A DNA stretch of 64,000 nucleotides from Schmidtea polychroa (Eukaryota), in contig CM097888.1 in the NCBI GenBank assembly GCA_044892525.1, positions 47,058,001-47,122,000 of the forward strand, in the 5' to 3' direction. The stretch's first letter is position 1, and every line of letters begins with the position of its first letter. Under the pieces are notes generated by a model that saw only the letters and a program-made list of their open reading frames with translations, ran no database searches and had not been told where the DNA came from. Below are positions 1-62,467 of the stretch, one piece after another. A program made the translations under genes and the position numbers.

Positions 1-3000
1 GATGCAAGTGGATATGCAGCCGGAGCAATATTAGGACAACTCGACGAAGAAGGAAAAGAAAGAGTGATTGGATACTACAGTAGAACGTTTAAAAAGCACG
101 AGAAAAACTATTCCGTAACCGAGAGAGAAGCGTTAGCAATCATACAAGCAATTAAACACTTTCGATATTTACTATGGGGACACGAAATATGTATCACCAC
201 GGATCATCAACCATTAGTATGGCTTGGTCAACACAAAGAAGCTTCAAGTAGATTGATGCGATGGGCAATGCAGTTACAAGAATATTCACCGTTCATAAAA
301 TTCAAAGCGGGAAGAGCGAATGCCAATGCGGATTGTATGTCCAGATTTATCTTTCCAGATTTAGTAGATCACGAAATGCAACGAATATGTCTGATGGTAG
401 CAGAAGATTTAGATTTTTGCCAATTACGGAAAGACCAACAAGAGGATACAGAGTTGAAGCAAATCATTGAATATGTGAAAACAGGGAAAGCAGAGGTATA
501 TGAGAAAGATCAAAAATTGAAGGAGCATATGGATAAACATCGACATCGATATATTATCGAGAAAGATTGGTTATTGATAATGGATGGCGAGAAAAGACTG
601 ATGTGCATTCCCGAGAATAGACGTAAAGATCTACTAACACAATACCATGACGGAAGACTCGGAGGACATATGTCATCTAAAAAGACGTTGGCACGAATGA
701 AACAAAAATATTTTTGGCCTACATTGACCGAGGATGTAACGGAATGGGTGAAAAATTGCATAACTTGCGCAACCAGAAAAAACACGGGAACAAAATGGAA
801 GGCACCATTAAAGCCAATGCCAGTACCAGCAGAACCAATGACAATGATATCAATGGACGTAGTCGGTCCACTACCAGAATCAGATAGAGGAAATATATAT
901 ATATTGGTAATCACAGATTATTTGACAAAATTCCCCGAAGCATTCGCAATGGCAGATCAGAAAGCAAGAACAATCGCAAAAATATTAGTAGAGGAAATAT
1001 GTTGTCGATATGGAACGCCGAAACAAATACTGACGGATCAAGGAACGAATTTCATGAGCGAAATAATGAGCGAAGTCACCAACTACTTCAAGATCGCAAA
1101 ATTAAGAACATCACCGTACCATCCACAAACTAATGGTATGACAGAAAGATTCAATGGAACACTGATTCAAATGTTATCAAATTATGTCGATCGTCATCAA
1201 CGAGACTGGGATGAATATATAAAATTATGTCTAATGGCTTACAGAATGTCGATTCACGCGTCCACAAAGATGAGTCCGTTCAAGTTGATGTACGGCAGAG
1301 AATGCAATATGCCAATGGATTTAGAATATCAGCCACCGATATCACAATACATGGAAATAGACGATTATGTAACCAAGTTCAAGGAAAGAATGCAGGAAAT
1401 CTGGGAAACCGCAGGATTGAATATAAAATTTTATCAAGAAAGTTACAAAGAGTTACATGATAGAAAGAAAAACGTCAAACAGCATACGTTTCAAACAGGC
1501 GAATGGGTGATGATTGAAACACCAGAATTAATTCCAGGAACCACCAAAAAATTACAACGAAACGGTAAAGGGCCGTATGAGATTCTATTCGTCGGAGAAA
1601 CTAATGTAAGAGTACGATTAGTGAACAACCCTTTTACAAGACCAATATACGTAAATGTTGCACGATGTAAGCCAATTCCGAAAACCGCCACCAGTCAGCC
1701 GGAAGGACGTACACTAACGACAAGATCACAAACGTATAGAATAAACATGTTACAGCAAATAAACGAACCAACAGGTAATCGATTAGGGTTACAACCATCA
1801 GAAGCCGAGAAAATCATAAAGGAAGTAAAAGTTAAAATGCCCGGATGGGCAGAAGACAGATTAGATTTTGAGATATTGGGAGGTCTGCTAACAATGATCG
1901 AAAATTATGCAAACCGAGAAAGAACACACCCATTGCTCAGGGTAGTTAAAAGTCAATGGCCTATATTATTCACGATCACAGACCACTACGGAGACACACC
2001 CCTGCACAAGCTTTTAAAGGTGGGTAGTAACGAACAGATATTAGAAACAATTGAAGCATTTCGCGATTGTAACATTTCGACAGATCAAGAAAACAACCAA
2101 GGTTACACTCCACTAATGATAGCAGCCAATCGGGATAAAGCTAAAGATATTATCATCGCATTACTTGAAACTGGGTCAAGGATAACCACACAAGATCACA
2201 ACCAGAAAAATGCATTACATCATGCAATCGAAGGGAAAAGTACGGAAGCCTTCATAATCTTAGTAGATCTAATATCATACGAGGATAATAGAGAGATAGG
2301 AAACATGTATGACGGGCTATTAACTGCAATCAAAGAGAAATTAACAACAATTACTGGAATACTAATTGCATGGAGGAACCCGATAAAAAACGATTATATG
2401 GTAGATATAAACGAAACATTTACCAAAGGAGAAAATACCTTGATGAGAGAAGCGATGAGAGGACATCACCTATTCGAAATTCCAAATCAACTACTACAAC
2501 GAGGCATAAAATTCTCAAATCACAAAGACGAACAACTAATCAGAAAACGAATTACCAACTTCGAAAAAGCTATATCTCAATTTACCGATAAAGTACAAGT
2601 AAAATTTTGGGACACCGTGAGTGTTTTACATATGATGGAAACTATGAACAACATTCGAGAAAACTACCTAAGTATTATTCAAGTTCTAACGGCAGAGGAA
2701 CGCATTAACAGTTCGAACAAGAAAAAGATAAAAATGAAGAAAGTAAAAGCAAGAGAGTCTGAGGAACAAGTCGATCAACCAATAACCGATATAGCAACAA
2801 CAAGTAAACCAAAGATAATAAACTCCGACCAAGAGATAGTAGTACGTAAGGCTAAAGAAGTATTCTTTGAAGAAATGCAAGATCTATCCGATGAAGCGAT
2901 ACTAGCAAAAATAACCAAAACAGTACACACCTACGCAAGAGATCAGACCACAAATCTAGACATAGGAAAAATAAAAACATTTATACCACTAGCATTCACC

Positions 3001-4983
3001 TTACCAACAAAAGACTCAAGAACACCATTACAACAAGCCATTTTAGCAGCAAAAGAGAACAGAGCAATAACCATCATAAGAATCCTCAGAGACTTCGGAG
3101 AAGAATCTAATGCAAAAAACGAACAAGGGGAAACAGCAATGATGTATGCAGCCATAACAAATATACACCCGAAAACATTACATATACTACATCAATCAGG
3201 TTCGAGACTTGACGAAAGATCAAACGAAGGAAATTCTGCCATGGATTGGGCAACAATACAACCAAACTTGGAAATGATTAGATTCATTTGCAAAAATGCT
3301 ACAAGAACTGAGGTAGAAAATATCTGTAAAAACACGTCACAGTTCCAATGGAACACGATACGGATGAACTTAGAAGCCATGAAGTTGCTGCTAACATGGA
3401 GAATACCACAGAGCAATAAATATGCAATAAATATAAATGAGTTCTACGAAAACGGAGAAAATGCTATGGTTAAAAATACACTAACAAAAGGAGGAACTCC
3501 GAAAATCATAATGATCGTATTAAACAGAGAAGATCTCAAATTCACGCAGAATCTAAACGAACAAAAGCGAATCGGGAAACATCGTCGGATACAATTAAGA
3601 GAATTAGTGAAAGAATGGAATAGAAAGAGACATGTAGCAACAGGCAGAAAGGAGTTCGAACTCGAAGCAAAATTAGCAAGAAACAGAGTGCTAACGGCAT
3701 ACCGCAGATTGTTGAATGATATAAATGTCGAGGACGACATTTTAAACGATAGCGGGGGAGATAAAGACGATAAAGACGATAAAGACGACGATAATAATGA
3801 AAAAGGTCGAAACGGGAATAAAGAGAAAGAGAAATCAGAGGAGAATAATCAAGAAAATAACGACGCGAGTAGGAAAAAAGAGGAAAATAACCCGAGAAAC
3901 CGAATAAAGCAAGAAGAAAAGACGAATAGTGGAAAACAGAGGGTATGCCTACTTTTTACCAACAAAGAAATGGAGACAAATATGATGATAATGATACTCG
4001 TACTAACAATGGTGGAAATGATAACAGCCCAGGGAGGAATGAGAACGATAAAAGAAGTCAAAGAAACGGAAAATAAGGACAGCAAAGAGGAAGAACTAAA
4101 ACAAGAAAAGAAAAAACAAGTACAAGAGCAGCAATGGGATCTAAAAGAAGAATGGGATTTAAAAGAAAGGTGTATATTAGGAAGATGTATGTCTAGAGCT
4201 TATCAGAGACTAGTGTTAAAAAATGAAGATGCAGAACCAATAACGGAAGTAAGAATACAAGAAGCATACCGAAATCGAGAAGGAAAGAGAATAACGAAAG
4301 TCAAAGGGAAGGAGGTACACCTGGGAAAAGGAGGTGAGGTAGTGATAACGCAACTCCAGCCAAGAAAAGAACACAAAGTCTGCATCGCAAGATTAAGACC
4401 GGGTGAAGACTGTCTACAATATGTAATACAGCAACAACCTCCAAAAGAATACACAATATGCATCTGGAGAAAAGATACAGCGAGAGAATGTCGACGATAC
4501 CCTGGGAAAAGAGGGAAGAAAAGAAAAATCGATGATGAAAAAGATGAGCAAGGAAAACGCAAGAAAAACAGTGAGAAACATCAAGACAACTATGTATCCG
4601 AAGAGGAGATGGAGAAAATACAAAAAATGGCAAAGGAAGGTATGAACGAGGAAATAGCAAGAATACGAGGAATGATGAAAGGAAATGGCAAAGACGGTAA
4701 TCTAAAAAGCACAGAAGCAATATCAACAATAACGAGCAAGGAAAAAGCGGAAATTATAAGCATAAAACAGATGATGTGGATCAGCGGTATAATAATAACA
4801 GGGGCCTTTTTAATCATAACGGGGGGGACAATAAAAATAATCAAAGACAGACGACATCGCGGGGAATTAGAAATGACCAGAATAAGAAATTTTCAACATC
4901 GTGTAAAACGACCAAGTAATATCAAGCAGGAACAGTGGGTGGAGGCCTGGAATGCTCAGCGCCCTCCAAGCTCACGTATATAG
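1..4983 (+). CDS. pol: Pol polyprotein C-terminal part: RNase H - integrase - ankyrin modules - membrane-anchored tail (frame open from base 1)
   Basis: Frame 1 is open from 1 (DASGYAAGAILGQ...NYSVTEREALA...TDHQPL, RNase H). Integrase HHCC (YHDGRLGGH...CITC), D-D35-E (SMDVVGP, TDQGTNF, NGMTERFN) and GPY motif. Ankyrin motifs GDTPLH, GYTPLMIAA, KNALHHA, RTPLQQA, GETAMMYAA, GNSAMDWA. Hydrophobic segments at about 3982-4030 and 4771-4842. No stop until 4981. Confidence 0.95.
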   Translation, partial: DASGYAAGAILGQLDEEGKERVIGYYSRTFKKHEKNYSVTEREALAIIQAIKHFRYLLWGHEICITTDHQPLVWLGQHKEASSRLMRWAMQLQEYSPFIKFKAGRANANADCMSRFIFPDLVDHEMQRICLMVAEDLDFCQLRKDQQEDTELKQIIEYVKTGKAEVYEKDQKLKEHMDKHRHRYIIEKDWLLIMDGEKRLMCIPENRRKDLLTQYHDGRLGGHMSSKKTLARMKQKYFWPTLTEDVTEWVKNCITCATRKNTGTKWKAPLKPMPVPAEPMTMISMDVVGPLPESDRGNIYILVITDYLTKFPEAFAMADQKARTIAKILVEEICCRYGTPKQILTDQGTNFMSEIMSEVTNYFKIAKLRTSPYHPQTNGMTERFNGTLIQMLSNYVDRHQRDWDEYIKLCLMAYRMSIHASTKMSPFKLMYGRECNMPMDLEYQPPISQYMEIDDYVTKFKERMQEIWETAGLNIKFYQESYKELHDRKKNVKQHTFQTGEWVMIETPELIPGTTKKLQRNGKGPYEILFVGETNVRVRLVNNPFTRPIYVNVARCKPIPKTATSQPEGRTLTTRSQTYRINMLQQINEPTGNRLGLQPSEAEKIIKEVKVKMPGWAEDRLDFEILGGLLTMIENYANRERTHPLLRVVKSQWPILFTITDHYGDTPLHKLLKVGSNEQILETIEAFRDCNISTDQENNQGYTPLMIAANRDKAKDIIIALLETGSRITTQDHNQKNALHHAIEGKSTEAFIILVDLISYEDNREIGNMYDGLLTAIKEKLTTITGILIAWRNPIKNDYMVDINETFTKGENTLMREAMRGHHLFEIPNQLLQRGIKFSNHKDEQLIRKRITNFEKAISQFTDKVQVKFWDTVSVLHMMETMNNIRENYLSIIQVLTAEERINSSNKKKIKMKKVKARESEEQVDQPITDIATTSKPKIINSDQEIVVRKAKEVFFEEMQDLSDEAILAKITKTVHTYARDQTTNLDIGKIKTFIPLAFTLPTKDSRTPLQQAILAAKENRAITIIRILRDFGEESNAKNEQGETAMMYAAITNIHPKTLHILHQSGSRLDERSNEGNSAMDWATIQPNLEMIRFICKNATRTEVENICKNTSQFQWNTIRMNLEAMKLLLTWRIPQSNKYAININEFYENGENAMVKNTLTKGGTPKIIMIVLNREDLKFTQNLNEQKRIGKHRRIQLRELVKEWNRKRHVATGRKEFELEAKLARNRVLTAYRRLLNDINVEDDILNDSGGDKDDKDDKDDDNNEKGRNGNKEKEKSEENNQENNDASRKKEENNPRNRIKQEEKTNSGKQRVCLLFTNKEMETNMMIMILVLTMVEMITAQGGMRTIKEVKETENKDSKEEELKQEKKKQVQEQQWDLKEEWDLKERCILGRCMSRAYQRLVLKNEDAEPITEVRIQEAYRNREGKRITKVKGKEVHLGKGGEVVITQLQPRKEHKVCIARLRPGEDCLQYVIQQQPPKEYTICIWRKDTARECRRYPGKRGKKRKIDDEKDEQGKRKKNSEKHQDNYVSEEEMEKIQKMAKEGMNEEIARIRGMMKGNGKDGNLKSTEAISTITSKEKAEIISIKQMMWISGIIITGAFLIITGGTIKIIKDRRHRGELEMTRIRNFQHRVKRPSNIKQEQWVEAWNAQRPPSSRI

Positions 4984-5151
4984 AAAGGATTATGACTGTA
5001 TATAGATTGTAAAAAGTAAGTAGGAAATATTTATTTATATAACAATATTCTATATTTTTATATAAGCGCGGTATCAATAGTATATAATGATGGGGATAAT
5101 TAATATGAAAATAAAATTAGATAAGGATTGAAAAGTATATATAAATTAAGA

Positions 5152-5511
5152 ATGGAGCGAATAGGCGAGGAAGTAAACCACAGTACAACAACCGAGGAGA
5201 TGTGGAAACAACAATGTGCAATGTTAACTCAAGTGATTTCGAATTTACAGGAACAAGGACTCGCTGTACAAAGAAGCTTAGTCGAAAGTTTAAATAAAGG
5301 CTTCAATTATGTAAGAATAATCGAAGACCAACGAATGAAAATAGAACAAATGCAGCGAGAGATAGACCGAATATCACGATACAGCCAGGTGCAAGAAGAG
5401 GAGTTAATAAGAATCGCGGAAGAGATGGAGCGAGAGGAGATAGAAGACTGGTCAGAATGGTTAACCAGCAGGGAAGAGGGCGGACAAGAGGCCGACTCTT
5501 CCAGCCAATAA
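5152..5511 (+). CDS. Retroelement accessory ORF, about 119-aa coiled-coil protein of unknown function
   Basis: ATG at 5152 in an open frame with E/Q/R-rich heptad-like composition; same strand and base bias as neighbouring ORFs; AT-rich spacers on both sides. Confidence 0.7.
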   Translation: MERIGEEVNHSTTTEEMWKQQCAMLTQVISNLQEQGLAVQRSLVESLNKGFNYVRIIEDQRMKIEQMQREIDRISRYSQVQEEELIRIAEEMEREEIEDWSEWLTSREEGGQEADSSSQ

Positions 5512-5601
5512 ATATAACCTAAAATAGCAATGTAAATAAATGTAAATAAAAAACACGAAACTGTACCAGTAACGAATATATGTATATATATAATTATAGA
5601 A

Positions 5602-6990
5602 ATGGATAAGCGACAACGAGAAGAATTCAGAGAAATTGTTGAACAAATCAGAAAGTCCACCACAATTCGAATACACAACCATGTAACGTGTGGAATATGC
5701 AAGAGCTTATTAAGAGAACCTCACCAAACCAGATGTGGATGCAGAATGTGCAAAGAATGTATAGAGGAGATAATAAAGAAGGGACCACAATGGTGCCCAG
5801 TATGCAAAGAAACAATGATAACAAGTTTGGGAGATACAAACGAAGATAAAGCAGCTGTAAAAGATATGTTAAATGCAAACCTAGGATGTAAAAACACCCC
5901 ATGTAATTGGCGAGGAGTGATATGGGAAGTGAGGCAACATATGGAGCAATGTGAGTATAAAATCAGTCAATGCAAACGTTGCCAAGAAGAGATTAAAGTC
6001 AATGAAGAAGCAGAACATCAAAGTCGATGCGAAGAAAGACTGGAGAAATGCGAGTATTGCGGAGAAAACGACACCTGGAAGAAACTAATCAGTCAACATC
6101 ACAACATACAAGAGGAGAAAGTGTGCGCAGAATTCAGAGGAGAATGCCCCAACAAATGCGATAAACCCGGAGTAATAAAACTCGCTCAACATCTAAAAGA
6201 GTGTGAAAGAAAAAAGATAACGTGTGTGCTAGGAAAATGGGGATGTCAGAAACAATTACACCGAGGGGAATTACCCCAACATCTAGCAGAAAACGTATCA
6301 ACACACGCGGAAATATGGTCAACGGTATTACAGGAAAACGAAAGGAAAACCGAAAACTTAGAAAGAGAAATAGTCTCGCTAAAAGCGTTGGTAAAAGAAC
6401 TATTGGAAGAAAAGGAAGCATTTGAAGAGGCGAGAACAAGTACAAAGATACAGACAGATCTAGTAGAAACTAGCAACATTATGGTGAAAGAACTATATCA
6501 AAAAGTAAGCGAATTAAACCTCAACGAATTAATACCTACGGCTCCGTACATATGGAAAATAACGGGAGTAAAAGAGAAGATGCAGAGAGCGAGAAATGGA
6601 AAGGATACAACATTACTAAGTCCAGCATTCTACTCATGGAAAAACGGGTATAAAATGAAAATGAAAGCATACCCCAATGGGGATGGAAGTGCATACGGAA
6701 CGCATTTCTCAGTATTCTTCTTGATGTGCAAAGGGCCATACGACGAGTTAATAGAATGGCCATTCAAAGCAAAAATAGACCTCGCAATGATGAACTATCA
6801 AAGTATACACGAACAGAGTTTCCATACAGCGGGAAACCTCGTATGTTACCAAAGGCCCTTGGAAGAAGAAGGACCAGCAACCGGAGCACCAAATTTCATC
6901 CTACAGCGGAAAGTAGAAGACATGACGAGAAACGACACTATATACATAAAAATAGCGGTGAGGCGAGACGGGAAGAGTAGGACTGAGTAG
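5602..6990 (+). CDS. TRAF: Full-length intronless TRAF-family protein (RING, TRAF zinc fingers, coiled coil, TRAF-C/MATH), 462 aa
   Basis: RING CGIC...P..TRCGCRMCKEC...CPVC; repeated C-x-C/H TRAF fingers; coiled coil ENERKTENLEREIVSLKALV; MATH hallmarks YIWKI, SPAFYS..GYKM..KAYPNGDG...GTHFSVFF..KGPYDELIEWPF. Paralog (TRAF2/3/5-like) cannot be resolved by eye. Confidence 0.95.
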   Translation: MDKRQREEFREIVEQIRKSTTIRIHNHVTCGICKSLLREPHQTRCGCRMCKECIEEIIKKGPQWCPVCKETMITSLGDTNEDKAAVKDMLNANLGCKNTPCNWRGVIWEVRQHMEQCEYKISQCKRCQEEIKVNEEAEHQSRCEERLEKCEYCGENDTWKKLISQHHNIQEEKVCAEFRGECPNKCDKPGVIKLAQHLKECERKKITCVLGKWGCQKQLHRGELPQHLAENVSTHAEIWSTVLQENERKTENLEREIVSLKALVKELLEEKEAFEEARTSTKIQTDLVETSNIMVKELYQKVSELNLNELIPTAPYIWKITGVKEKMQRARNGKDTTLLSPAFYSWKNGYKMKMKAYPNGDGSAYGTHFSVFFLMCKGPYDELIEWPFKAKIDLAMMNYQSIHEQSFHTAGNLVCYQRPLEEEGPATGAPNFILQRKVEDMTRNDTIYIKIAVRRDGKSRTE

Positions 6991-7209
6991 AGAGACGAAT
7001 AATTTTGTATATACTAATTGTAAATATCGGCGTATATATCCAGTAAAATATTATATAGTAGTGTAGAAAATTCCCCCCAAATCTACCAAAGGTAAACTTA
7101 AGCGGAAAACTCCTAAAACAACTCCTATAACGAATTATAAAAATAAATAAATAATAAACCAGATATAAGCGTACAACGTTGAGTTAATGATATCGTTATT
7201 TAGACAAAG

Positions 7210-8031
7210 ATGACACAAAAAGGAACTGAAGCCCCAAACCACGAAACCAAAGTCAATAAAATCCATAAGGGAAAATGGGTCAAAGTAATGTTACAATTGA
7301 CGAACCAGACCCACAACCATCTCGAAGAGGCCAGGGAATACGAGAATAACAAATATCAGTGGTTAGTAAACAATTTAAGAGCCGAAGCAGAAGCATGCAA
7401 AAGAGCCTCTAAGTGGGCATCATTGGAAAACACTCGCCAAGAAGCGCACAGCCACTATTTAAAACAGTTAGTGCAGGAAGCACGGAAACGATTGACGGAC
7501 GAAAACACAAAACGAGAAGCAGAAAAACAAAAGGAAGGAAGGAAAATGAATCACCTATTGGCAGAAGCCCGAAACTGGAAGCGGCAGAACAAAGAGATGA
7601 AAAAAGAAATGAAAGAATTGCCTATGAGATTAGAATACGAAAGCGAACAAGGCAAATGGGAGGAAAATCTGGTCATAAGAGAAGAACTGAAACGGCTCAG
7701 AAAGATTGCGGCCCGAAGCCAAACATGGCAGACCAAAGCCATGGAATTTGAAAGACATCTAGCCATGAAAATCTCCATAAGGGAGCACGAGAATGCCGCA
7801 ATGGAAGAACTGATACTTCAACAGTCAGGACGACTCGTGGAACTGGTGAATAAGGTCGCAGAACTAGAACGAGATGTCAACGGATACCAAGGAGCTCTGG
7901 AGCAGAGAAATATGGTACTGGCGGGGAAAAACAAAAAGTTAGAAAACGAAAGGAAAATGTATAACGAAAATCTTAAAAATCTGGAGATAGAGATCAAGAA
8001 ATGGGAAAACGGCGAAAAGCGGAAGAGCTAG
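7210..8031 (+). CDS. Retroelement accessory ORF, 273-aa coiled-coil protein (possibly continues into 8001-8246 across a frameshift)
   Basis: Long open frame with E/K/R/L heptad composition; preceded by ttttag|acaaagATG. Confidence 0.75.
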   Translation: MTQKGTEAPNHETKVNKIHKGKWVKVMLQLTNQTHNHLEEAREYENNKYQWLVNNLRAEAEACKRASKWASLENTRQEAHSHYLKQLVQEARKRLTDENTKREAEKQKEGRKMNHLLAEARNWKRQNKEMKKEMKELPMRLEYESEQGKWEENLVIREELKRLRKIAARSQTWQTKAMEFERHLAMKISIREHENAAMEELILQQSGRLVELVNKVAELERDVNGYQGALEQRNMVLAGKNKKLENERKMYNENLKNLEIEIKKWENGEKRKS

Positions 8032-8246
8032 AAAAACAGATAGAGGTAAGAGACGATGAAACCAGGTATCTAACATACCTGTTGGACGAGGAACTTAACG
8101 TGTCAAGAGCACTAAGAGACGAAGTGCAAGAACTTAGAGCGCAGATTCCCCGGTACTACATCCCATTTGATCCCATCGCACTCCAATTACAAACGTCAGT
8201 AGAAAGCGATGAGGGATATGTAGGCCAGGAAGAGACCTTTGTATAA
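8001..8246 (+). CDS. Short overlapping ORF, likely the frameshifted C-terminus of the 7210 ORF
   Basis: Overlaps the previous ORF by 31 nt in another frame and continues the coiled-coil pattern (AEELEKQIEVRDDETRYL); no spacer or acceptor in front of it. Confidence 0.5.
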   Translation: MGKRRKAEELEKQIEVRDDETRYLTYLLDEELNVSRALRDEVQELRAQIPRYYIPFDPIALQLQTSVESDEGYVGQEETFV

Positions 8247-8421
8247 AGATAAAAGGAAAGATAAAAAATATAAAAATCGGGACCTGTATCCCAACCAAAA
8301 AAAATTAATGGTACAGTAAAAGTATGAAAGGGACTGTAACCCTGATTATAAAATAACATATAAATGTATAAGTATAAGCCGCACTGTAGCGCAATTATTA
8401 ATTATGTATATATTATAGAAA

Positions 8422-9123
8422 ATGAACACTGAAAACGGACAACCCAGCATAACATCTATAATTGAGTTAGAAGAGGGAGAAATTGAAGTTGATGAAGTGG
8501 AGAGGAAGAAAACTATCAAGGAAGAATTACAAGAAGAGAGACAGGAAAACGAAAGATTAGTTGAAAGATGGAGAGATAATCGAAAAATGATTAAAGTATT
8601 GAAAAGAGAATATATCTTGTTAGAAGGAGTAAAGAAAGAAGTAGAGGAGGAAAACGAATGGCTTCACGAGCAAAGAAAGCGAGGGAGAAATTGGGAAAAG
8701 ATCGCGGAAGAATTATGGCAGGAGAGGGCCAGTCGAAAGGCCGACGAAGTGATTAGTGACTATTGGAAAACCGAGGCACGGAAACACCAGGAAAGCCTGA
8801 AAGAGTTACAACTCCAACTACACCAAAAACAGAAAGAATGTGAGATAATGAGACGAATGAACAACAAATACCAGGAAATAGACAACGAAGAGGACGGGGA
8901 AAGGGAAAATGATTTTCTACAGATAATGAACCATAGAAACCTCGAAAGAGCAACACAAGAAATAAAAGCACTAAAAGGAAAAATAATAACCCTAAGGCAA
9001 CAGTTAGACGAAAGAGACAAACAATTAAAAGTACTACCCGAATTGAGAAAACGAGTAATAAAAGCAGAAACGAGAGTGATGAGAACATCCGAGAAAACCC
9101 GTAAAAAGAAAACCCGGCAATAA
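8422..9123 (+). CDS. Retroelement accessory ORF, 233-aa coiled-coil protein with basic C-terminus
   Basis: Open frame, highly charged heptad composition, ends KTRKKKTRQ; preceded by ttatag|aaaATG. Confidence 0.75.
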   Translation: MNTENGQPSITSIIELEEGEIEVDEVERKKTIKEELQEERQENERLVERWRDNRKMIKVLKREYILLEGVKKEVEEENEWLHEQRKRGRNWEKIAEELWQERASRKADEVISDYWKTEARKHQESLKELQLQLHQKQKECEIMRRMNNKYQEIDNEEDGERENDFLQIMNHRNLERATQEIKALKGKIITLRQQLDERDKQLKVLPELRKRVIKAETRVMRTSEKTRKKKTRQ

Positions 9124-9178
9124 TTAAAGATGAATGATCAATGTAAATAATTGTAAATAAAAATTTTCGTATAGTAGT

Positions 9179-9805
9179 ATGTGGTTCGGAGCAACCTTGG
9201 TGACAATAATGATGATAGCGATAAACGGGATACCCATGTGGCAACCAATCCCAACACTCTGGGAGAATCCCGAGAAACAGCAAAACTCGTTAACCAAACT
9301 AAAAAGCGCAAGAAAGCTCTGCAACAACATCCCGAAACAATGCTGGAACAAAGCCGTCTGGCAAAAACTTCAAATGCAACTCCACCTACAAACCCAAAAA
9401 ATCGAACAGCTCGAAACTCTCTTACAAGAACAAACCACCCAACAATCCTTGAAGGAAATCATCATGAAGAAGGAAGTAAAAGAAAGCCAAGTCTTACTCT
9501 ATACTACCATCAGTGAAACCCTTATCATCTGCGCACTAGTCATCTGGAAAGCGTATGATATTCATCGAACATGGAGAAGAAACCAGTCACTATCCGAAAA
9601 ACACGAAAGAAAGAACCCACGATCGAAAAATAAATATAAACGAGCAGTACATTTTCAACAACCAAACCCACCCGACCAAATGCAACAAAATCTATCTCCT
9701 GACCAAATGCCTGTTACAATCCAGCTCCCCACGATAACAACTTCAACCAGCCATCCGACCCAGAATTCAACTAACCAAGACATTCCGAACCTTGAGATCA
9801 TGTGA
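9179..9805 (+). CDS. Retroelement accessory ORF, 208-aa predicted membrane protein (N-terminal signal/TM, coiled coil, second TM, P/Q/T-rich tail)
   Basis: Hydrophobic MWFGATLVTIMMIAING; heptad LQMQLHLQTQKIEQLETLLQE; hydrophobic VLLYTTISETLIICALVIW followed by basic residues. Confidence 0.7.
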   Translation: MWFGATLVTIMMIAINGIPMWQPIPTLWENPEKQQNSLTKLKSARKLCNNIPKQCWNKAVWQKLQMQLHLQTQKIEQLETLLQEQTTQQSLKEIIMKKEVKESQVLLYTTISETLIICALVIWKAYDIHRTWRRNQSLSEKHERKNPRSKNKYKRAVHFQQPNPPDQMQQNLSPDQMPVTIQLPTITTSTSHPTQNSTNQDIPNLEIM

Positions 9806-10530
9806 CATCGACCATTCATAAACTTTGTGTGTATAAATCCGGTCACCTAAAGTGGCCACTGCTTGCTTATATTTGTCCTTTTATCTGTTTAATTAAAGTA
9901 TTATTTAGTTATTTTAATTTTATGTTTGTGTGAATGTTGACCGTGAAATTAGTTGTTATGCCGAAAAAAGGTATGAGTTAAACGTATGATATTATATGAA
10001 TTGCGGGGCGCAATTTTAACGGGCCCCGGAGTGATTTGTTGGGCTAAAATGCGGAGTGGAGAAAACTGGAGCGAATAGAAAATAAACCTCGAAAGATAAA
10101 TGAAATAAGATAAAAATATCAAGTACCATAAAAATCTCACTAGTAAATAGGAAGGAACAATAAAATAACAATAAAAGAATAAGAATAAGTAAACAAACTA
10201 AATAAAATCCAATAAACCCCTTAAGATTTAGAAATAAAACGGGTTAAGGTACACAGCGGATAAAATAGAAATAGAATAAGTAAAAAAGTAAAAACAAATA
10301 AACGAGGAATTTAAGAAAATAAATAAAAATAAAACCATCTTAAGTCTAATTAAAACAAAAAATGATATTGCAATAAAATAACAATAAGTCCACAGGAAAA
10401 ATAGGAGAAAAATAAGAAAAATAAATAAAATAATAATAAGAGATAAGTCAGGTCATTAAAAATTTAAAATACGATGATAAAAACATAAAAATAATAATAA
10501 ATAGTAAAAATACAAGCAGGTAGCGTCCTG

Positions 10531-10580
10531 ATTGGACGAAAAATACTATATATGTAACGTGAAAAATTAGACGACAACCA
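10531..10580 (+). promoter_or_regulatory. LTR core promoter: CCAAT box (ATTGG), TATA box, predicted initiator
   Basis: ATTGG 10531-10535, TATATAT 10547-10553, Inr-like CCACTTT about 33 nt downstream; same layout in the solo LTR. Confidence 0.65.
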
Positions 10581-12930
10581 CTTTTAATTTTTCACGATTA
10601 CAGGTAAAATTTTAGAAAAGAACTTAGAACCACTTTTAATTTTTCACGATTACAGAGCATAGACTTCAGATATTTCACCGAATTCAGGACTAGAATCGCA
10701 AACGCCAATTCCAGAGATTTTCAGAATTTAACTTTAATTTAGTCGAGACCATTTTAAATTCGATTTCGTTCCAGTTTTTGAAACTACCGGTAGGCCGATT
10801 GATTTATATGTATTAGTAATTTATTAATGATGAAAAACAAAACTCATTTCGTAAAATAAATTTATTGAAATACAAATGGCCTTTTCTTCATGGTGCCGGC
10901 GACTGTACCATCTGAGAACTCCCAGTATGATGTGGATGAGTTGGAAATGTACCACGGTAGAGAACACAACAGTGGGAAGGTTGACCTTCATAAGAAATCC
11001 CGAAGATGCTGAAAATGAGAATGTGATATTTGCAGAGAAGGATATTTATCATACGAGAAATCCACCAAGGGTATGATGAGGCTGCGGTTGTGTGGAATGA
11101 ATAGCATCATACTTGGAGTCCAAATGATAGGGTCGCCGGGTGAGCTTTATTGATTCATTTATTTTCATTGATTTATTTATTTTTTGATTCATTTACTGCT
11201 ATTCGAGTCATTCATTCCTTTTATTATTCATAAATTGTATATTAAATGTTGATTTTGTGAAAGACGAGTCAAACGGTCCCTCACGACGATGCAAGAACGG
11301 CGGCAGAGATGATTGCCTTCTTGGGTGGGTCATGAGGGGTGAGGAGACTCCGCAGGTGGAATACTGTTGGAAGTGGAATTTCTCACATCGAGCGCGATCT
11401 GATAGAGGATCTTTCGTTTTCTTTTATGAAGTCACGCTGAAGTTTCAGAATAAATAATGCAAATTTCCAAAGTCGGAGACAATTTTTCGGATTGAGATCA
11501 GTAGTTCGTTGTTGTTAGGAAAATTTGCTTTTCCATCGAATATTGATAGATGTCTGAGTAGGGATGGGCGATGAATTGTTAGAGTTTTCACTGGAAGATC
11601 TGCTAAGCACTTAAAAATTGAACCCCGAGAGGTACATTGCAGGGACATTAGCGAGTAAACCCATTCATTGACTAATTTAGACTTTAGCTTGACATTGAAT
11701 ATCTGATAAAGTTTGGTTTGACGTTGACAGCGGCTCGTCTAAAATGGGAAAGTAAACAAATTTTTTGATAAGGAAATAAATCACTTGCCGTGAGTCCGAG
11801 TGAAGATATCAATAGCGATAGGAGAATCATTAGTTGCCCATGGCCAGATAAATTTCCGACGGGGAAAATCGGCTGATAATTTGATAAAGTCATCGAACGA
11901 GTTGATTGAGAAGGCGGCAGTCGATCGAGTGTATTGAGTGGTCTTATCGTGAGTCGACCTAATATCGAAAATCCAGAATATAGAGTAATTTTTATCTACT
12001 GAATCCGCAAGTCACCCACACAATCGAATTTCTTGAGTTTTGGACACACCAACTGAGTACCCGTCTCAACTAGAGCATCTCTCTACAACTCTACCTCTAT
12101 TAATCGCTCGCCCACATGTACACATGCATCACACTCAGATTAGGTCACAGTGCACATGTGGATATCATCATTACCTAATCATAGGGAGAGAGTCGTACAC
12201 TTGAAACTGCTGGTAGACCACTGGATTGCGTCAGAGAACATGGCGATGCGACGAGAAATTTTTTTTTTGTCAGTGTGCAAGTCGCTAGTTAAATGCACCA
12301 ACATGCATCGTGACGAACCCGTCGATAGTTGATGGCATAGATAGACAATCAAATGAACACATAACTGCGCCCAATTTAAGCGTCACTATGACGATGTTTA
12401 TGGCGTTAAATTGAAATAACTAAGTTATGAGCCATGATAAAAATTTAAGCGAGAGTATTATGATTTTCTTACAAACCCGAGGGGCCTACATACAAGACGG
12501 GGTGTCCCGGTAATTGCCGACTTTCCGTTCATCATACAGCACGCGTAGAATTTGATGACGTAGCAGCAAAATGAGTAAAATATAATGGTTAAAATGTAAC
12601 AACGATAATTAAGATAATAGCATTCATAGTAACGAATTAACAGTCATGCAGTAGTTAAAAATAGCCAAACCCATAAAGTAAACCTAAAAGCTAGCATAAT
12701 GAAGTGTCTTCATGAATCCCGTTTTCTTCTCATAAAGTAGTAATGATTTCATGGGTTAGTTTAGATGTTTGAGGTTGCATGAAGGTGAATGTTTGTCGAC
12801 GGGGTAGATTGGTAGGCCACTCTTTGATAACTTGGTCGGGGAGATTCTTAAACTTCATTTTTCCGAAAACATGAATAATGCCCCAGTGAATTTTTTTTAA
12901 TCTAACAATAAAAATTTCTTAACAATTCAG

Positions 12931-13695
12931 ATGAATACCTCAACCAGTTCCGGGAAAACCCTCAGACCTTGCTTTTCCTGTGCTGATAAAAATGCCGATA
13001 TCGCACAGCTCCACTTGTACATAGGGGAATTGAAGAAGAGAATTGACCTCTATGAGGGAACGTGGTTCTCCCCACCACAAATGAAGGAGGAGAAGAGCAA
13101 GATTCTGCGTCTGGAGCACTGCCGTGACAGTCTCCTGGAAGAAAGCAGGTGCCAGAGGTTAACCATAAAGGCCCAATCAGAGGCACTGCACAAGGTGTAT
13201 TCCGAATCAGAACTAGCGAAGCGAGTTCGCGAGTACCCGATACAAGATGGGACTAACGTGTTCCCAATGCACCACAAATTAGCTGAAACCTCATCAATAT
13301 CCAGTTGTAAAGGGCATGGCCCACAAATGCCGCCAATTCCCGCCCCAGTCCTTTCGGGCGATCGACCTATGGCTGGCGGTTCATCGGACCCTATCTTGGC
13401 TCCAGTACTCGTGCCACACCTCCTTCAGTCCCCAGCAGAAGCTACACTTCCCCATCGAAAGCGTAAGCGGCTGACGCGTTCTGAAAAAAATCAGAAGCGT
13501 AGAAATGCCATGGCCGCGCTCGAAGCATCGTTGTCCGCAGCCCAATCGACTATCAAGGAAATTACAGTTACCCATTCCATTCCTACAAAGGAAGTATTCC
13601 GGGTAGTTCCGGCCGACAGTATCAAATTCCTCGAGGATCGCCGGTTGCCCGTTGATATCGACGAGATGCTCGCAGAAGGAGAAGCATTCTCGTAG
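12931..13695 (+). CDS. LTR-encoded 254-aa protein (CxxC, coiled coil, Pro-rich linker, basic NLS-like patch, acidic C-terminus)
   Basis: Intact in both LTR copies; 95 of the first 103 aa identical while most differences are synonymous; ttcag directly before the ATG and a CTAAC branch-like motif at 12902. Confidence 0.85.
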   Translation: MNTSTSSGKTLRPCFSCADKNADIAQLHLYIGELKKRIDLYEGTWFSPPQMKEEKSKILRLEHCRDSLLEESRCQRLTIKAQSEALHKVYSESELAKRVREYPIQDGTNVFPMHHKLAETSSISSCKGHGPQMPPIPAPVLSGDRPMAGGSSDPILAPVLVPHLLQSPAEATLPHRKRKRLTRSEKNQKRRNAMAALEASLSAAQSTIKEITVTHSIPTKEVFRVVPADSIKFLEDRRLPVDIDEMLAEGEAFS

Positions 13696-14575
13696 CAAAT
13701 TCTCTCTCGGGTCTCGATTCCCTGCTATTACGAACGAACTTGAAGAAGCGACGTTATCTCGTGACTAATCTTTAATGTTTTGCATTTACTTAAACAATGC
13801 TGAATGTAATTTGATGTTCCGTTCTAATATAACTGTTCGATTTTCTTTGATTGTGTTAATTGTATGTATGATTTGCTACGGTTGAATTGCATGAGAGAAG
13901 GATCACGAAAATATAGTAGAAACTCAAATGTCGTACCTTTGGACCAGGGTCGGACCGAATGATGCGTAAAGAATGGGTAAGACCTTCTAAGGCACCGTAG
14001 AACCCGAACCGAGAAAGGGTTAGGAGTAGTCCTAAGGCAGGGGCTCACCTGCTAACTCTTTCCAACCCGTGTGAGCAGCACCAACGTGGAAACACCACCA
14101 CGGGCTCATACGTGGGAATATGCGAATGATCATTTGGAGTGTGTGAGGGAATGGTCTGAGCAGAATGATGATACCTGATGTGTATGATAATCATACCTAT
14201 ATATTTTCTTTTCCCCCCACATACGCCAACAAATAATTTGTTGCATAATATATATAAAACAATTTTTTATTATTTAATTTTTATATATTCTTAGTAATAT
14301 CTCTATGAAAATTTTTTCTTAATAATAATTTTAATTAATAAATTTTCTATTTCAGTTTTATTAATCATTAACTTTTCCTAGACGTTTTCCTGGCACTTTG
14401 GTAAAAATATTAGTTAAAATTATTCGATGAAAATACTGATTTTCAATATTAATGAAATTTGAAAGATCAAAATTTTAAAAAATAACTGAAATAAATAGAA
14501 AAACATCTACAAAAATTCAAACTTTATTATCGGTTTAATGTTTTGTTTAACACAATCAATATAATATCTCGATCA

Positions 14576-25507: not shown

Positions 25508-28500
25508 ATTTATCTATTTTATAAAATATATTAATTATATAAATCAATTAAATTTTTTTGTATTGCAAAATAATTCGATTTTTGCATAAAAATATAAATA
25601 ATTTCAAATAACTTTTTTTTAAATTTCAAATATTTAAAATGGCATTTCATGACTTATATTGCTAGATTTGTCCGACAGTTTATGACTAATCAATGGTAAT
25701 CTTATATTTTCAGTTATATTATCAGTTCCTACATACGCTATTTGGTTAGCTAGGCAAAATGCTCATAATGTGAGGTGCTTTTGATAGGATACGTCGAAAT
25801 CCCATTTTAAGTCTTGTATCATAAAGAGCATTATGTAGATATTCTCTTCTTCATAGGAATTATTTGACAAGTCACATATCATGAATTTCGTCAATTATAG
25901 AATTTCAATTTTATTGAAAAATAAATTAAGTCAGATTTTGGAACAAGTTTCGGATTTTGAAAATTTACATTAAAGAAACTAAAGTTACATTACATTTCGT
26001 TTTGCAATTTTTCCTTTTTATTTCAATTCGAGCATTAATATTATTAAGTTAGTTAAAATTTCATTAACCCTTTCAATGCCGGTGACGTTCTATACTTTTT
26101 TATGAAAATTTAAATACAACATAATTTAAACAAAAATCTATTTTTTTATATTTCATTTATTTTCATTATGACAAAGGATTTTAGGTCTTTTTTCATACGG
26201 GTTGAAAAGATCAAGTTATTAAACAAGAAAATAAAAGTAGAGAAGTGTAAATATTATAATTATATTCTATAAATATTATAAATTTGTCTACTTTTAATAA
26301 AATTCTAGTTACAACAGAAAATCTTTAAAAAACCAATCAGTTGTTACGATTCCAAAGATGAATGGAATTATAAATAATATTCAAAGTACCTGCATAATTC
26401 CTAAATTAACTACTGCCAAGTTATTAATGAGTCTCAGTCCAGAAATGGTAATTCTTCCAGCCAGCTGCTGAAGGGCTGAAAAAAATGTAAATAATGATCA
26501 TCCAAATAATGATGTAGGGTGGTGTAAAAAATATTATACATTTCCTTGACAGTTGAGATTATAGTTTCAATGAACATATACTCACATAGTCAGATTATTT
26601 AGGGAGTAGACGCGTAAAATAAAATTTTTTAAGCTCGAATTTTCAAATAACTTATTTCATGGCCTCTGAATCTGGGATGTGCAACAAGAGTAAAAATATT
26701 TCTCTATATATAAAAAAGCTAGGGGTCCCCTCCATCCGAATTTTACTTTTTAATTTTTTTTAAATTTTTTTTTGTCAAATAAATAAAATAATTTTTTATT
26801 AGTTTGGCTGTTTTGACGCAAGTCGTGTTAGATATTTAACGGGTTTACGTCTAATCCATACCTGAACATCATTAACCCCACGTTCTAACGGGGTTGGTGA
26901 AGCGAAGCGAACGGGGCAGAGCCCCTAGTATATATAAAAATGATAGATAAAGAAAATTAATATTTAATTATATTTAAAGTTTGAAGAAATTTTAGTTGAA
27001 GGTTGTTACGATTCATTATGATTACACCCATCATCATCACATGAAAAGATAGGATAGAAATGAAGCTGAAAACGATCACATTGACTGACTAGATGGATTT
27101 AATGGAATTCAAAATGAAAGAGCATAATTCAACAGATCTATAAATACCGTATTTATTTTCTTATAACACACAGGCTTTAATATTATCGTTCAATACTTTT
27201 TTAATTTTTAAAAACACTCAACTTTTAAACCCAACATGGTGGGTAAGAAGAATGCAACTGGGCGCATTTCTACAAAAGGATTCCACACAGTAGAAGTAAA
27301 ACATATGAGAACTGCATATACGATACAATTTAAAAAGAATGTGTTGGATTTCTATGATGTAAATGGTGCGTCACAGACAGTTACCAAATTTTGGCCTGAT
27401 CTAAAGTCATCATCGCCAGCTCGTGAAGCCAAAAGACAGTTAATATATCAATGGAGAAAAAATAAAGACCGAATAACAAAACTTGGGAATATGAATAGGG
27501 TCAAGAAATTGAAAAAGATCCGACCACTAGGAACTTCCTCGAGTCTTTCATCTGAAGTCGAAGACGAACTTATTTTCTGGGTCCGAACCCTGCGCCAAAA
27601 TGGTGTCCCCGTAACCGACAGTATACTTCGTACTAAAGCTCGCCTATCGTGCAGACAAACCGATGTTAATAATTTCTTAGCAAGCACTGGGTGGCTAAAA
27701 ACCTTTAAGAAAAAATATGGCTTGTCACTCAGAGCCAAATCTCATCAAGGACAAACATCCATAGTCCTTCCAAATCCGGTAGCCACTCAGTTTGCATTAG
27801 ATGTCCGACAAAAAATGATTGAATTAAATGTAGATTGTGTTTGGAATGCCGACCAAACGGCTGTTAATTATGAAACAATCCCCGGAAAAACCTTAGATAA
27901 AATAGGTTCCAAGACAATATTCATACGAACAGCTGGGAAAGAAAAAGAGAGGATATCAGTATTATTGCTGGGATCTTCTAATGGACAGAAAAAACCACCT
28001 TTTGTAATATTTAACCCTTTCGCACCGACTTTCCGCTAATGACACTATGCTAAATTTATATATTGGAACTTGTTAATATTGACCTAAATATATTCTCATT
28101 TTTGTAATCGTGGCGATTCTGAATATCCTAGAAAGTCCTGGGATAATAAGTCCCAATAGGCTTTTATGGACCATTCAAAATATCCCAGTAGGATCATGAT
28201 GAAAGTTTCTGGGACGTATTGTCTTAATAGGGGCGAAAGGGTTAAGGGTAAACAATCAGTTGTGGAGGCATCATCGTTGCAGAATAGAATTAATCAACAT
28301 GGATTTCGTAGTTGTGTCTGGAAAAAAATACAGGAGATCAATAAAACCAGCACGACTCAAATATATTGCAACCAAAATGGCTGGTTTACAAGCGATATGA
28401 TGGTTATCTGGCTTTATCATAATTTTTCCGAAAATGTGGAGAAGCCAAAGATTTTATTATTGGATGACTTTACAGCACACTGGACAAGCGATGTTTTAGC

Positions 28501-55352: not shown

Positions 55353-56150
55353 TCAGCCACTCGATTCTTCTTTCATTCGTTTCTTGTTGTGAATGTAGTT
55401 CGACTCGATGAGGCGATAGAAATCTGACGATTTTATATGGGCTATTGTATTGCTTACCATCCTTGTGCCTGTTCTGTGGCTCTTTACATACGAGTACCTC
55501 TTAATCCACTTTGAAAACACGAGGTCCCTCTTTGTCTTATCCATAGCTCTCATAGTGTCTGCGACTTTACTCGAGTTAAATCTCGCGTTTTCGGTTCTTT
55601 CGCTTCTTGATATCTCGGCTTGTTTCAGGTTAGAGTGTATGTTAACACTTCGTCCATAAATTATCTCAAATGGTGATAAACCTGTAGCACTTTTTCGACT
55701 GCTATTTATAGTGAACTCTATTCTTGGTAGAAGTTCATGCCAGTTTCTCTCTTCAAATCGACCTACCAATGCTGCTGTAATAAGATCTCTTATCGTTCGT
55801 ATGGCTCGTTCGGCTAAACCATTTGATTGGTGCTGGTAAGGTGAGCTGAATTACTGTTTGATTCCAAGTTTCTGTACTTCTGTTTTAGGAAATTCCCTTC
55901 GAAATTTCGGCCTCTATCTGTTAAAATGCTCTTCGGTTTTCCAAATCGATAGATCCAACTATTAAGTATTGTTTTGAAAATTGTCCCTTAGTCTTGCTTT
56001 GTGATTTCAGTTAAAGATATCAGTTTGCTAAAACGGTACACCATTACTACCATATATTTTTATGGCGTTTATTTTCATGTAAGCCACATCTATAACAATC
56101 TGTTCTAGGAATTTAGAGCTATATCTTAGGAATAAATGTTTTCTTGGTTC
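55353..56150 (-). pseudogene. Integrase core of the small Gypsy element (frameshifted), downstream of the solo LTR
   Basis: FLEQIVIDVAYM, LTDRGRNFE, SSPYQHQSNGLAERAIRTIRD, LPRIEFTINS...TGLSPFEIIYG. Confidence 0.88.
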
Positions 56151-56672
56151 TGTTGGCGTATGTGGGGAAGAGAAAGATATGCACGTGTAACCTTCACACA
56201 TACAAGGCGTCATCGTTCCACTCAGGCACTCCCCCTACATACCCCAGATGATCAAATGCATATTCCCACGTATGAGCCCGTGGTGATGTTCCACGTTGGT
56301 GCTGCTCACACGGGTCGGAAAAGGTTAGCAGGTGAGCCCCTGCCTTAAGACTACTCCTAACCCTGTCTCGGTTCGGGTTCCATGGCGCCGTAGAAGGTCT
56401 TACCCGTTCCTCTGCACATCATTCGGTCCTTCCCTGGTCCAAGGGGACGACCCTGTATTGCTACCTAAATCCGATATCGTCCTATTGTTCACTTTTAATC
56501 CCATATCATGCATACCAGAAACAATCACCGAGAGACAATTAAAATTATATTACACCCACAACAATAACTACATTTATAATAAGAAAAGTGACTGTCACAA
56601 AATAAATGTTCAATATTCACAAATACTCAGGTCCGCTTTCGAATCTTGCAGAATCAAGGCAGTGGAAATCGG

Positions 56673-59799: not shown

Positions 59800-59853
59800 A
59801 GAATGATACTCTACAGATTTTTGTCGCTCTTTATATATTATTTTCTGTCCAAT
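59800..59853 (-). promoter_or_regulatory. Solo-LTR core promoter (CCAAT box, TATATAAAG, Inr-like TCATTC)
   Basis: ATTGG 59853-59849, TATA 59837-59829, TCATTC about 31 nt downstream on the minus strand. Confidence 0.7.
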
Positions 59854-60345
59854 CAGGACGCGACTCGTTTGTATTTTTACTATTTATTATTATTTTTATG
59901 TTTTTATCATCGTATATTAAATTTTTTAATGGCTTGGCTTATTCTTATTATTATTTTATTTATTTTTTCTTATTTTTATTATTTCTCTTCTATTTTCCTG
60001 CGGGCTCATTGTTACTTTATTGTAATATTATTTTTTGTTTTAATTAGACTTAAAATGGTTTTTATTTTTTATTTATTTCTTAAATTTCTCGTTTATTTGT
60101 TGTCACTTTTTTACTTATTCTATTTCTATTTTATCCGTTGTGTGTTTTAACTCGTTTTATTTCTAAATCTTAAGGGATTTATTGGGTTTTATTCAGTTTG
60201 TTTTACCTATTCTTATTCTCTTATTGATTTTTTATCGTTCCTTTCTATTTACTAGTGAGATTTTTTATATTTTTATCTTATTTATTTTTCGAGGTTTACT
60301 TTTCTATTCGCTCCAGTTTTCTCCACTCTGAAATTTAGCCCAACA

Positions 60346-60851: not shown

Positions 60852-60855
60852 TGTA

Positions 60856-62420: not shown

Positions 62421-62467
62421 TAGCGACTTTGTCGATTTCGAAATGGCGTTGTTGTTTTGATTTTCGG

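Follow-up and report, generated by a model that had tools for sequence, protein, structure and literature searches.

The 64,000-nucleotide (nt) stretch of Schmidtea polychroa DNA that we analyzed (assembly GCA_044892525.1, contig CM097888.1, positions 47,058,001 to 47,122,000 of the forward strand; hereafter the window) contains two copies of a 4.2-kb long terminal repeat (LTR) of a Ty3/gypsy retrotransposon, and both copies carry the same arrangement of short sequences immediately downstream of the TATA box. In each copy, a segment that we call X is present twice in direct orientation (X1 and X2): X1 ends at a predicted splice donor, X2 ends a predicted GT-AG mini-intron of 50-52 nt, and a sequence upstream of X1 can fold back over the donor. 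This repeat/hairpin/mini-intron architecture is very probably functional. Among the explanations weighed here, the one that fits best, although we hold it tentatively, is that the mini-intron would be removed from the 5' end of RNA that begins downstream of the TATA box, masked and therefore kept in RNA that reads through the 3' LTR, and restored during reverse transcription in a step that would rewrite X2 at strand transfer.

Repeats, predicted mini-introns and hairpins downstream of the TATA box

The features that make up the arrangement in the two copies, LTR1 on the plus strand and a solo LTR on the minus strand, are the following.

10531-10535, plus strand: inverted CCAAT box (ATTGG), kept in both LTR copies
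10547-10553, plus strand: TATA box of LTR1 (TATATAT), where sequence conservation between the copies stops
59837-59831, minus strand: TATA box of the solo LTR (TATATAA)
10549-10571, plus strand: upstream stem arm of LTR1, pairing with 10583-10606 (the 3' part of X1 and donor GUA)
59818-59808, minus strand: upstream stem arm of the solo LTR, pairing with 59791-59781 (the last 9 nt of X1 and donor GU)
10576-10603, plus strand: X1 of LTR1, predicted exon 1, 28 nt, with a C/A step at its left edge and ACAG followed by GTAAAA at its right edge
59807-59783, minus strand: X1 of the solo LTR, 25 nt, with a T/A step at its left edge and ACAG followed by GTAAAA at its right edge
10604-10655, plus strand: predicted 52-nt GT-AG mini-intron of LTR1, composed of a 24-nt spacer (10604-10627) and X2 (10628-10655)
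59782-59733, minus strand: predicted 50-nt mini-intron of the solo LTR, composed of a 25-nt spacer and X2 (59757-59733)

The coordinates first proposed for the TATA boxes, X repeats, spacers and introns all hold on re-reading of the sequence, as do the distances at which X starts after the TATA box, 29 nt in LTR1 and 30 nt in the solo LTR; in LTR1, the gap that follows the TATA box is 22 nt long. X1 and X2 are identical at 28/28 positions in LTR1, where the match extends no further at either end, and at 25/25 positions in the solo LTR, where inclusion of the next G makes the match 26 nt long. The first base of X forms a pyrimidine-purine step in both LTRs, both X segments close with ACAG, and both spacers open with GTAAAA. 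A branch-like YTRAY motif is located at X positions 7-13 (TTAAT in LTR1, CTAAC in the solo LTR), 15-16 nt before the AG, and with this motif, the GT-AG borders and the length of 50-52 nt, the unit resembles a spliceosomal short intron at the level of sequence in both copies. Short introns in S. mediterranea peak at 45-85 bp (PMC13594981), and the predicted 52-nt and 50-nt mini-introns fall inside that peak.

When all 64 kb were scanned for perfect direct repeats (20 nt or longer, 25-150 nt apart), the two X pairs alone emerged, AAT/ATT-type simple-sequence arrays aside, indicating that the repeat layout is real and not a product of chance. A second scan of the window, for shorter repeats ending in AG and followed by GT, found no further case of this kind, and the 13-mers of the variable blocks that surround X in the two copies showed no meaningful recurrence elsewhere in the window, which speaks against an origin of X as a copy of another part of it. 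A local tandem duplication created by mis-assembly or replication slippage is thus a most improbable source of the pattern. The region is AT-rich and nothing specific argues for such an origin, which would have had to produce the same geometry at two loci, on opposite strands and in unlike sequences, in a 64-kb window that contains no other such repeat and with no runs of N nearby.

Because X, followed by GT, comes after a TATA box and flatworms trans-splice, X was also considered as a spliced leader. No Rfam family matched anywhere in the window, and the two spacers share no Sm-type motif. X as a spliced leader or other known RNA was ruled out, the Rfam and tRNA searches of the window being empty.

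Folding predictions place a hairpin over the donor in both copies. In LTR1, nucleotides 10553-10571 pair with 10583-10602 in a stem of 19 bp with one bulged A, and beyond a one-base internal loop the pairing resumes for another three bases, between 10549-10551, which belong to the TATA box, and the donor GUA at 10604-10606 (folding free energy, dG, -17.8 kcal/mol; z = -4.6). In the solo LTR, an 11-bp hairpin covers CAG/GU (dG -15.4 kcal/mol; z = -4.9), and in both cases 0/200 shuffled sequences folded as stably. The presence of these stems had been predicted correctly, but both are larger than first described (19 bp plus three pairs rather than 17 bp in LTR1, and 11 rather than 9 bp in the solo LTR). 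RNAs beginning at X1, and hence lacking the upstream arm, have no significant structure (z = -0.3 and +1.85); in silico, the donor of either LTR is paired only when nucleotides upstream of the predicted start are included. Since the arm lies between the TATA box and the predicted start, it would be present in read-through RNA only, and we think it somewhat probable that the arm is what separates read-through RNA from initiated RNA.

Two anciently diverged LTRs and a proposed cycle of intron regeneration

The limits of the repeated unit and its terminal parts are given below.

10037-14231, plus strand: LTR1, the 3' LTR, 4195 bp, bounded by TGTTGGGC...CGCCAACA, the termini at which homology to the solo LTR exactly starts and stops
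56151-60345, minus strand: solo LTR, a diverged lineage of the same family, with the same termini and a 4-bp target duplication, GAAC
10037-10575, plus strand: putative U3, A-rich and non-coding
13925-14231, plus strand: putative U5/leader element, the G+C-rich 3' end of the LTR, predicted to be structured and about 90% conserved in its solo LTR counterpart (56151-56456, minus strand)

Homology between the two loci opens at TGTTGGGC (10037; 60345) and closes at CGCCAACA (14231; 56151), such that both copies have the termini TGTTGG...CCAACA, with 6-bp inverted ends. Past position 14231 the sequence switches abruptly to an unrelated, AT-rich flank, and the flanks contain 21-30% G+C. The proposal that the second copy is a solo LTR is borne out by its termini, by the GAAC duplication and by the gene that it interrupts: it splits the integrase gene of another element, with the zinc-finger domain upstream and similarity to the integrase core downstream. 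A deleted element in place of a solo LTR was rejected, given the integrase pieces on both sides. Because the 5' end of the element to which LTR1 belongs is located outside the window, the solo LTR with its target duplication is the best evidence here for a true LTR. With these features, and with LTR1 directly behind the pol and accessory ORFs described below, the 4.2-kb unit behaves as the LTR of a Ty3/gypsy (Metaviridae-type) element.

Each LTR contains an open reading frame (ORF), and between the copies this ORF has a nonsynonymous divergence (dN) of 0.18, an identity at third codon positions of only 39% and a synonymous divergence that is saturated and not computable. By these measures the two LTRs are old relatives that diverged anciently, and the gene is under purifying selection. 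The parts of the LTR that remain conserved between the copies are U3 (86% identity), the ORF and the last 300 nt. The block of about 300 nt from just after the TATA box to approximately 10854 is unalignable, and so is most of the interior of the predicted second intron described below. Outside the terminal TACAG, X matches between the LTRs at 5/20 positions, compared with a random expectation of 0.28. The claim that X is unlike between the LTRs and identical within each is thus upheld, but the original prediction understated the extent of the difference, as the divergent block reaches well beyond X.

With neutral sites saturated and X at random likeness, the different sequences found in the two LTRs are simply what neutral drift would leave. 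Kept despite this drift are the TATA spacing, the identity of X1 and X2, TACAG/GTAAAA, the 52/50-nt period, the YTRAY motif and the stem over the donor. A perfect repeat in two saturated lineages would require copy-correction at a rate far above that of mutation, and survival of the whole architecture despite saturation makes both constraint and active X1/X2 copy-correction necessary.

A replication cycle that would provide such copy-correction can be described as follows. RNA started from the TATA box would lack the upstream arm, and its cap-proximal mini-intron would be spliced out. In RNA reading through the 3' LTR the arm would be present, the hairpin would hide the donor, and the intron would be kept. 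Strong-stop DNA copied from the spliced 5' end would finish in the complement of X and could pair in register with X2 and exon 2 of the 3' copy, after which synthesis would proceed through the spacer, X1 and U3. In this way the intron would be rebuilt in both new LTRs and X1 would overwrite X2 in each cycle, such that X1 and X2 would stay perfectly identical while X drifts freely between lineages. The stem would be kept by ordinary compensatory selection and would hence be imperfect. Two features of the copies agree with this scheme. The direct repeats are perfect and the stems are imperfect, with a bulge, G-U pairs and unequal lengths, as expected from mechanical copying of the repeat and selection on the stem; and the edges of the repeat coincide with the predicted RNA 5' end and with the exon-intron junction, which is what complementary DNA (cDNA) of a spliced 5' end would leave.

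The reading first put forward, in which splicing at the 5' end, masking at the 3' end and rewriting of X2 at strand transfer act together, fits these data best, although we would put its probability somewhat short of even. A little more doubtful is its central element taken as a whole, a self-regenerating intron: a spliceosomal intron in R that would be removed from the RNA 5' end and yet inherited, with X2 serving as the landing pad for strong-stop DNA and a U3 hairpin guarding the 3' copy.

Other parts of the LTR gave observations of their own. All three frames of U3 are equally similar between the copies, indicating that U3 is non-coding. The 86% identity of U3 (10037-10552 on the plus strand versus 59832-60345 on the minus strand) is found despite saturated neutral sites, which implies either that more than 500 nt are strongly constrained or that the lineages have recently exchanged U3. 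The segment 13925-14231 has 82 predicted pairs, four of them with compensatory changes between the copies, and this 300-nt end of the LTR may act as a leader, in packaging or as U5. Searches for relatives of the LTR with a 27-base conserved U3 pattern found none in metagenome or viral contigs, and back-translated scans with alignment of the ORF likewise found none.

Predicted transcription unit, LTR-encoded gene and competing explanations

Downstream of the mini-intron, both copies contain the parts of a second predicted splicing event that joins the LTR start to the ORF.

10656-10789, plus strand: predicted exon 2 of LTR1, 134 nt, ATG-free, with the conserved words GACTTCAG (10662-10669) and CCAGTTTT (10771-10778)
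59732-59569, minus strand: second predicted exon of the solo LTR, 164 nt with no ATG, opening with GACTTCAG and stopping before the donor AAG/GTATGC
10790-12930, plus strand: predicted intron 2 of LTR1, 2141 nt, with donor CCG/GTAGGC and acceptor TTCAG abutting the ATG
59568-57435, minus strand: second predicted intron of the solo LTR, 2134 nt; its AATAAA occupies 59488-59483, and its acceptor, TTTAG, directly adjoins the ATG
10855-10895, plus strand: candidate poly(A) signal AATAAA, then CA and a U-rich stretch, conserved, where homology between the copies resumes
12931-13695, plus strand: LTR-encoded ORF of 254 amino acids (aa), 73% identical at the aa level to the solo LTR ORF
57434-56673, minus strand: intact ORF of 253 aa encoded by the solo LTR

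From X1 to the second donor there is no ATG in 214 nt of LTR1 or in 239 nt of the solo LTR, the mini-intron included (P approximately 0.03 each by shuffling); intron 2 contains 2.4-2.6 ATGs per 100 nt. The acceptor at the ATG of the ORF is conserved in both copies and is preceded by CTAAC/TTAAC-type motifs. Given an ATG-free leader and an acceptor that abuts the ATG, the promoter most likely drives a spliced mRNA composed of X, exon 2 (134 or 164 nt) and the ORF. The nearest ATG upstream in LTR1 sits within the TATA box (10551-10553), which places the predicted start between 10554 and 10576. This conserved 254-aa gene inside the LTR, apparently promoter-driven and with a predicted spliced mRNA, was overlooked in the original prediction. 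Intron 2 is nearly constant in length although mostly unalignable, and its 5' part contains three short conserved patches (10855-10935, 11105-11175 and 11276-11399).

That the promoter would serve a spliced mRNA of the 254-aa ORF, with its ATG-free leader and acceptor at the ATG, is also what would be expected if the mini-intron were an ordinary 5'-untranslated-region intron of the LTR gene, created by a single local duplication or insertion that produced AG/GT, with no role in replication and with its repeats identical through gene conversion or recent origin. Direct repeats at intron borders are widely reported (PMC11782384). An ancestral duplication should, however, have decayed given the saturation of neutral sites, and identities of 28/28 and 26/26 call for a mechanism that actively maintains them; it is implausible that the arrangement arose recently twice over, at one and the same nucleotide and with the same donor word and period, and the covarying upstream arm would be unexplained. 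We consider an ordinary intron of this kind quite unlikely.

The protein encoded by the LTR is predicted to begin with a helical N-terminal domain, which is followed by a proline-rich, disordered middle and a helix rich in arginine and lysine, in an AlphaFold model of low confidence (mean predicted local distance difference test score, 59). Its middle part diverges most (dN 0.41 for codons 101-180). No relatives were detected at E <= 1e-3 among 5.8 billion proteins, and comparison with PDB sequences gave no match. Among 1.84 billion representatives searched with a profile, 11 matched weakly, all of them chimeric gene models from UniParc in which the matching domain (residues ~33-125) is fused to unrelated host domains; these models are probably mis-joined solo-LTR exons. 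A regulatory, RNA-binding role for the protein is a guess.

An arginine-rich helix and a fast-diverging middle part would suit a protein that co-evolves with its target, and the boundary between conserved and variable sequence (10552/10553) is located upstream of the stem arm. Both points bear on the possibility that transcription starts near 10553, with the arm in a TAR-like hairpin or response element at the 5' end of every transcript and the X copies serving as duplicated RNA- or DNA-binding sites for the 254-aa basic protein. Such a start would lack a TATA box approximately 30 nt upstream of 10553, and the ATG at 10551-10553 borders a leader that is otherwise ATG-free. Selection on binding sites, moreover, would not give identity at all 25-28 positions, and the donor, the acceptor words and the branch motif would be unexplained. 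The TAR-like possibility therefore seems to us improbable, slightly more so than an ordinary intron.

The conserved AATAAA is a candidate poly(A) signal, and if it is used, R would be approximately 300 nt long. It is located ~280 nt downstream of the donor ACAG/GTAAAA, which itself is located at +25 to +28 from the predicted start. No significant structure was predicted around the second donor or the AATAAA (z = -0.24 and +1.04). A 10-nt stretch of the solo LTR spacer (59779-59770), within the mini-intron, is complementary to the AATAAA region 280 nt downstream (59502-59493, minus strand); the LTR1 counterpart is weaker and A/T-rich, and the complementarity is probably a chance match in A/T-rich sequence.

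The position of the donor relative to this signal would also be accounted for by control of polyadenylation as in foamy viruses, without regeneration of any intron: the X1 donor would recruit the U1 small nuclear ribonucleoprotein (U1 snRNP) and suppress the AATAAA ~280 nt downstream in RNA of the 5' LTR, and the U3 arm would mask the donor in read-through RNA, leaving that signal free for use at the 3' LTR. The duplication of X would then be a by-product, its identity maintained by frequent misaligned strong-stop transfers that expand and contract the repeat, and direct repeats in retroviral genomes do recombine during reverse transcription. Consistent with this, the AATAAA, with its CA and U-rich element, is conserved exactly where homology resumes, it follows the donor, as the signal of foamy viruses does (PMC3694450), and in both copies the donor lies under a hairpin. 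Another donor (10790; 59568) that is not masked nevertheless separates the hairpin from the AATAAA, and at the 3' end it would still be bound by U1. A repeat that expands and contracts should vary in its number of units, yet both copies contain exactly two. The coincidence of the repeat edges with the predicted start and the donor, together with the branch-like motif and AG of X, would remain unexplained. We regard polyadenylation control alone as an unlikely explanation, although the least unlikely of those that dispense with regeneration.

Intron regeneration is thus the reading that we prefer, but several observations weigh against it. The comparison covers two LTR copies (n=2), a 3' LTR and a solo LTR from different elements, and no clear purine run that could serve as a polypurine tract abuts LTR1 at 10037. 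The acceptor-like word GACTTCAG, 14 nt (LTR1) or 8 nt (solo LTR) past X2, is the sole conserved word at the start of exon 2, and it constitutes a second acceptor candidate whose use would throw the pairing with X2 out of register. Should the RNA that starts from the TATA box double as genomic RNA, it would have a leader of more than 3.6 kb that contains the whole ORF, which would be unusual. The arm is equally complementary to X2 (in LTR1, it has a 12-nt exact inverted match to X1 and X2 alike), and the minimum-free-energy fold of the longer RNA uses X2. Antisense folds are nearly as stable (-15.1 and -15.8 kcal/mol), such that folding alone does not assign the hairpin to either strand. Finally, misaligned strand transfers between X1 and X2 could homogenize the repeats without any splicing.

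The host element, known systems and significance

Outside the LTRs, the following parts of the two Ty3/gypsy elements are present in the window.

1-10036, plus strand: internal region, the 3' part of a giant Ty3/gypsy element by Pfam matches, with the 5' part outside the window
64-4983, plus strand: ORF for the C-terminus of the polyprotein, with RNase H, integrase zinc finger and core, then ankyrin repeats
5602-6990, plus strand: separate RING+MATH TRAF-like ORF, by Pfam matches
7210-8031, 8422-9123 and 9179-9805, plus strand: further ORFs
55605-62564, minus strand: older, degenerate Ty3/gypsy element hosting the solo LTR, with gag (CCHC), protease and integrase pieces

The older element contains one nested insertion, the solo LTR in its integrase gene; its reverse transcriptase/RNase H region is missing, indicating at least one deletion, and upstream of its gag the window shows no 5' LTR. 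In the younger element, the accessory ORFs that follow pol (4984-9180, plus strand) are divided by short A/T-rich gaps containing TATATA-like and AATAAA/AATGTAAATAA words, which suggests separate small transcription units or processing signals. Matches to the TRAF-like ORF have ~27% identity. The closest relatives of the pol of this element are metagenome entries with 46% identity, the nearest being contig L001 (ENA metagenome ERZ25039515, at least 15 kb), in which a gene matching the Pfam family Monjiviricetes_fusion (4094-6340) is located upstream of protease and pol. Neither L001 nor contig L002 shows similarity to the LTR or a comparable repeat. Elsewhere in the window, a pogo/Tc5-type DNA transposon with HTH_Tnp_Tc5 and DDE_1 ORFs occupies 27236-28873 (plus strand), and a 156-240-bp piece 97% identical to it is found in inverted orientation 20 kb away (48066-48305, minus strand).

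Burro elements, giant gypsy-like LTR retrotransposons of planarians, were reportedly presented by Grohme et al. in 2018. Giant gypsy elements of the Burro/GYPSM1 type have been described from planarians (Arkhipova and Yushenova 2019, PMC6431247; PMC11410931), and for Dugesia tigrina a separate accessory ORF is reported in connection with the MATH/TRAF module (PMC6431247). The element in the window resembles these giant gypsy elements, an assignment made by its domain set against the published description: it shares an RNase H-integrase polyprotein with ankyrin repeats, a MATH/TRAF module (here in a separate ORF), LTRs on the kilobase scale and surroundings of more than 70% A+T, and its nearest pol relative carries a mononegavirus-type fusion-protein gene, in line with published reports of an env-like gene in Burro elements. 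In the Burro literature consulted in a limited search, neither a spliced gene encoded by the LTR nor a mini-intron or a repeat/hairpin is described.

The hairpin part of the proposal has a parallel in foamy viruses, whose major splice donor is located in R, upstream of the poly(A) signal, and in which U3 nucleotides -13 to -1, present in 3'-LTR RNA only, refold the donor and exclude U1 snRNP (Schrom et al. 2013, PMC3694450). The two systems would have in common a donor within the LTR tens of nt past the start (here a predicted one), an upstream sequence confined to read-through RNA, identical LTRs that act differently and a poly(A) signal downstream (here a candidate). In foamy viruses, however, the outcome is U1-dependent suppression of polyadenylation and not the removal and regeneration of an intron; R contains no acceptor, and no copy of exon 1 ends an intron. 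The refolding there is modest in comparison with the 11-22-bp hairpin here, and the sequences are unrelated. The original interpretation is supported as to the LTR nature of the unit, the positions of the repeat edges and of the stem arm, and the retained architecture, whereas its statement that no equivalent had been described fails for the hairpin half, which has published precedent in this masking of a donor by U3 nucleotides.

Introns have been noted in transcripts of L1, Tad, kangaroo-1, Penelope and Athena (PMC1636488, PMC6431247). Like the predicted mini-intron, these are spliceosomal-type introns in reverse-transcribing elements, and their survival through RNA copying poses the same question, but the elements in which they occur are non-LTR, Penelope or tyrosine-recombinase elements with other modes of replication, and none has been described with a duplicate of exon 1 at the intron 3' end or with regeneration by strand transfer. 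In a limited literature search, no title or abstract dealt with an intron at an LTR start bearing a copy of exon 1 at its 3' end, or with strand transfer as a means of rebuilding an intron. As a self-regenerating unit, the mini-intron would be new. The two LTRs of a retroelement evolve in concert, and direct repeats are deleted or duplicated during retroviral strand transfer. As in LTR pairs, the scheme proposed here would have one template region copied to two places, renewing their identity in each cycle; classically, though, this involves two LTRs, or engineered repeats that are lost, whereas here a short repeat inside each LTR would be re-created.

Two identical LTRs must behave differently, which is a standing problem for retroelements, and an analogous and much stronger hairpin in an invertebrate gypsy element, if real, would mean that the foamy-type solution is widespread or has evolved more than once. 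A complete, selectively maintained gene with its own promoter and predicted splicing inside the LTR is itself unusual for LTR retrotransposons. Retroelements that are copied through RNA are expected to lose introns spliced from the copied RNA. If the proposal is true, a repeat that serves as a landing pad would give reverse-transcribing elements a new means of retaining an intron, with the benefits of cap-proximal splicing and without intron loss, and it would represent a new source of concerted evolution, since copy-correction of a short repeat would be built into each LTR.

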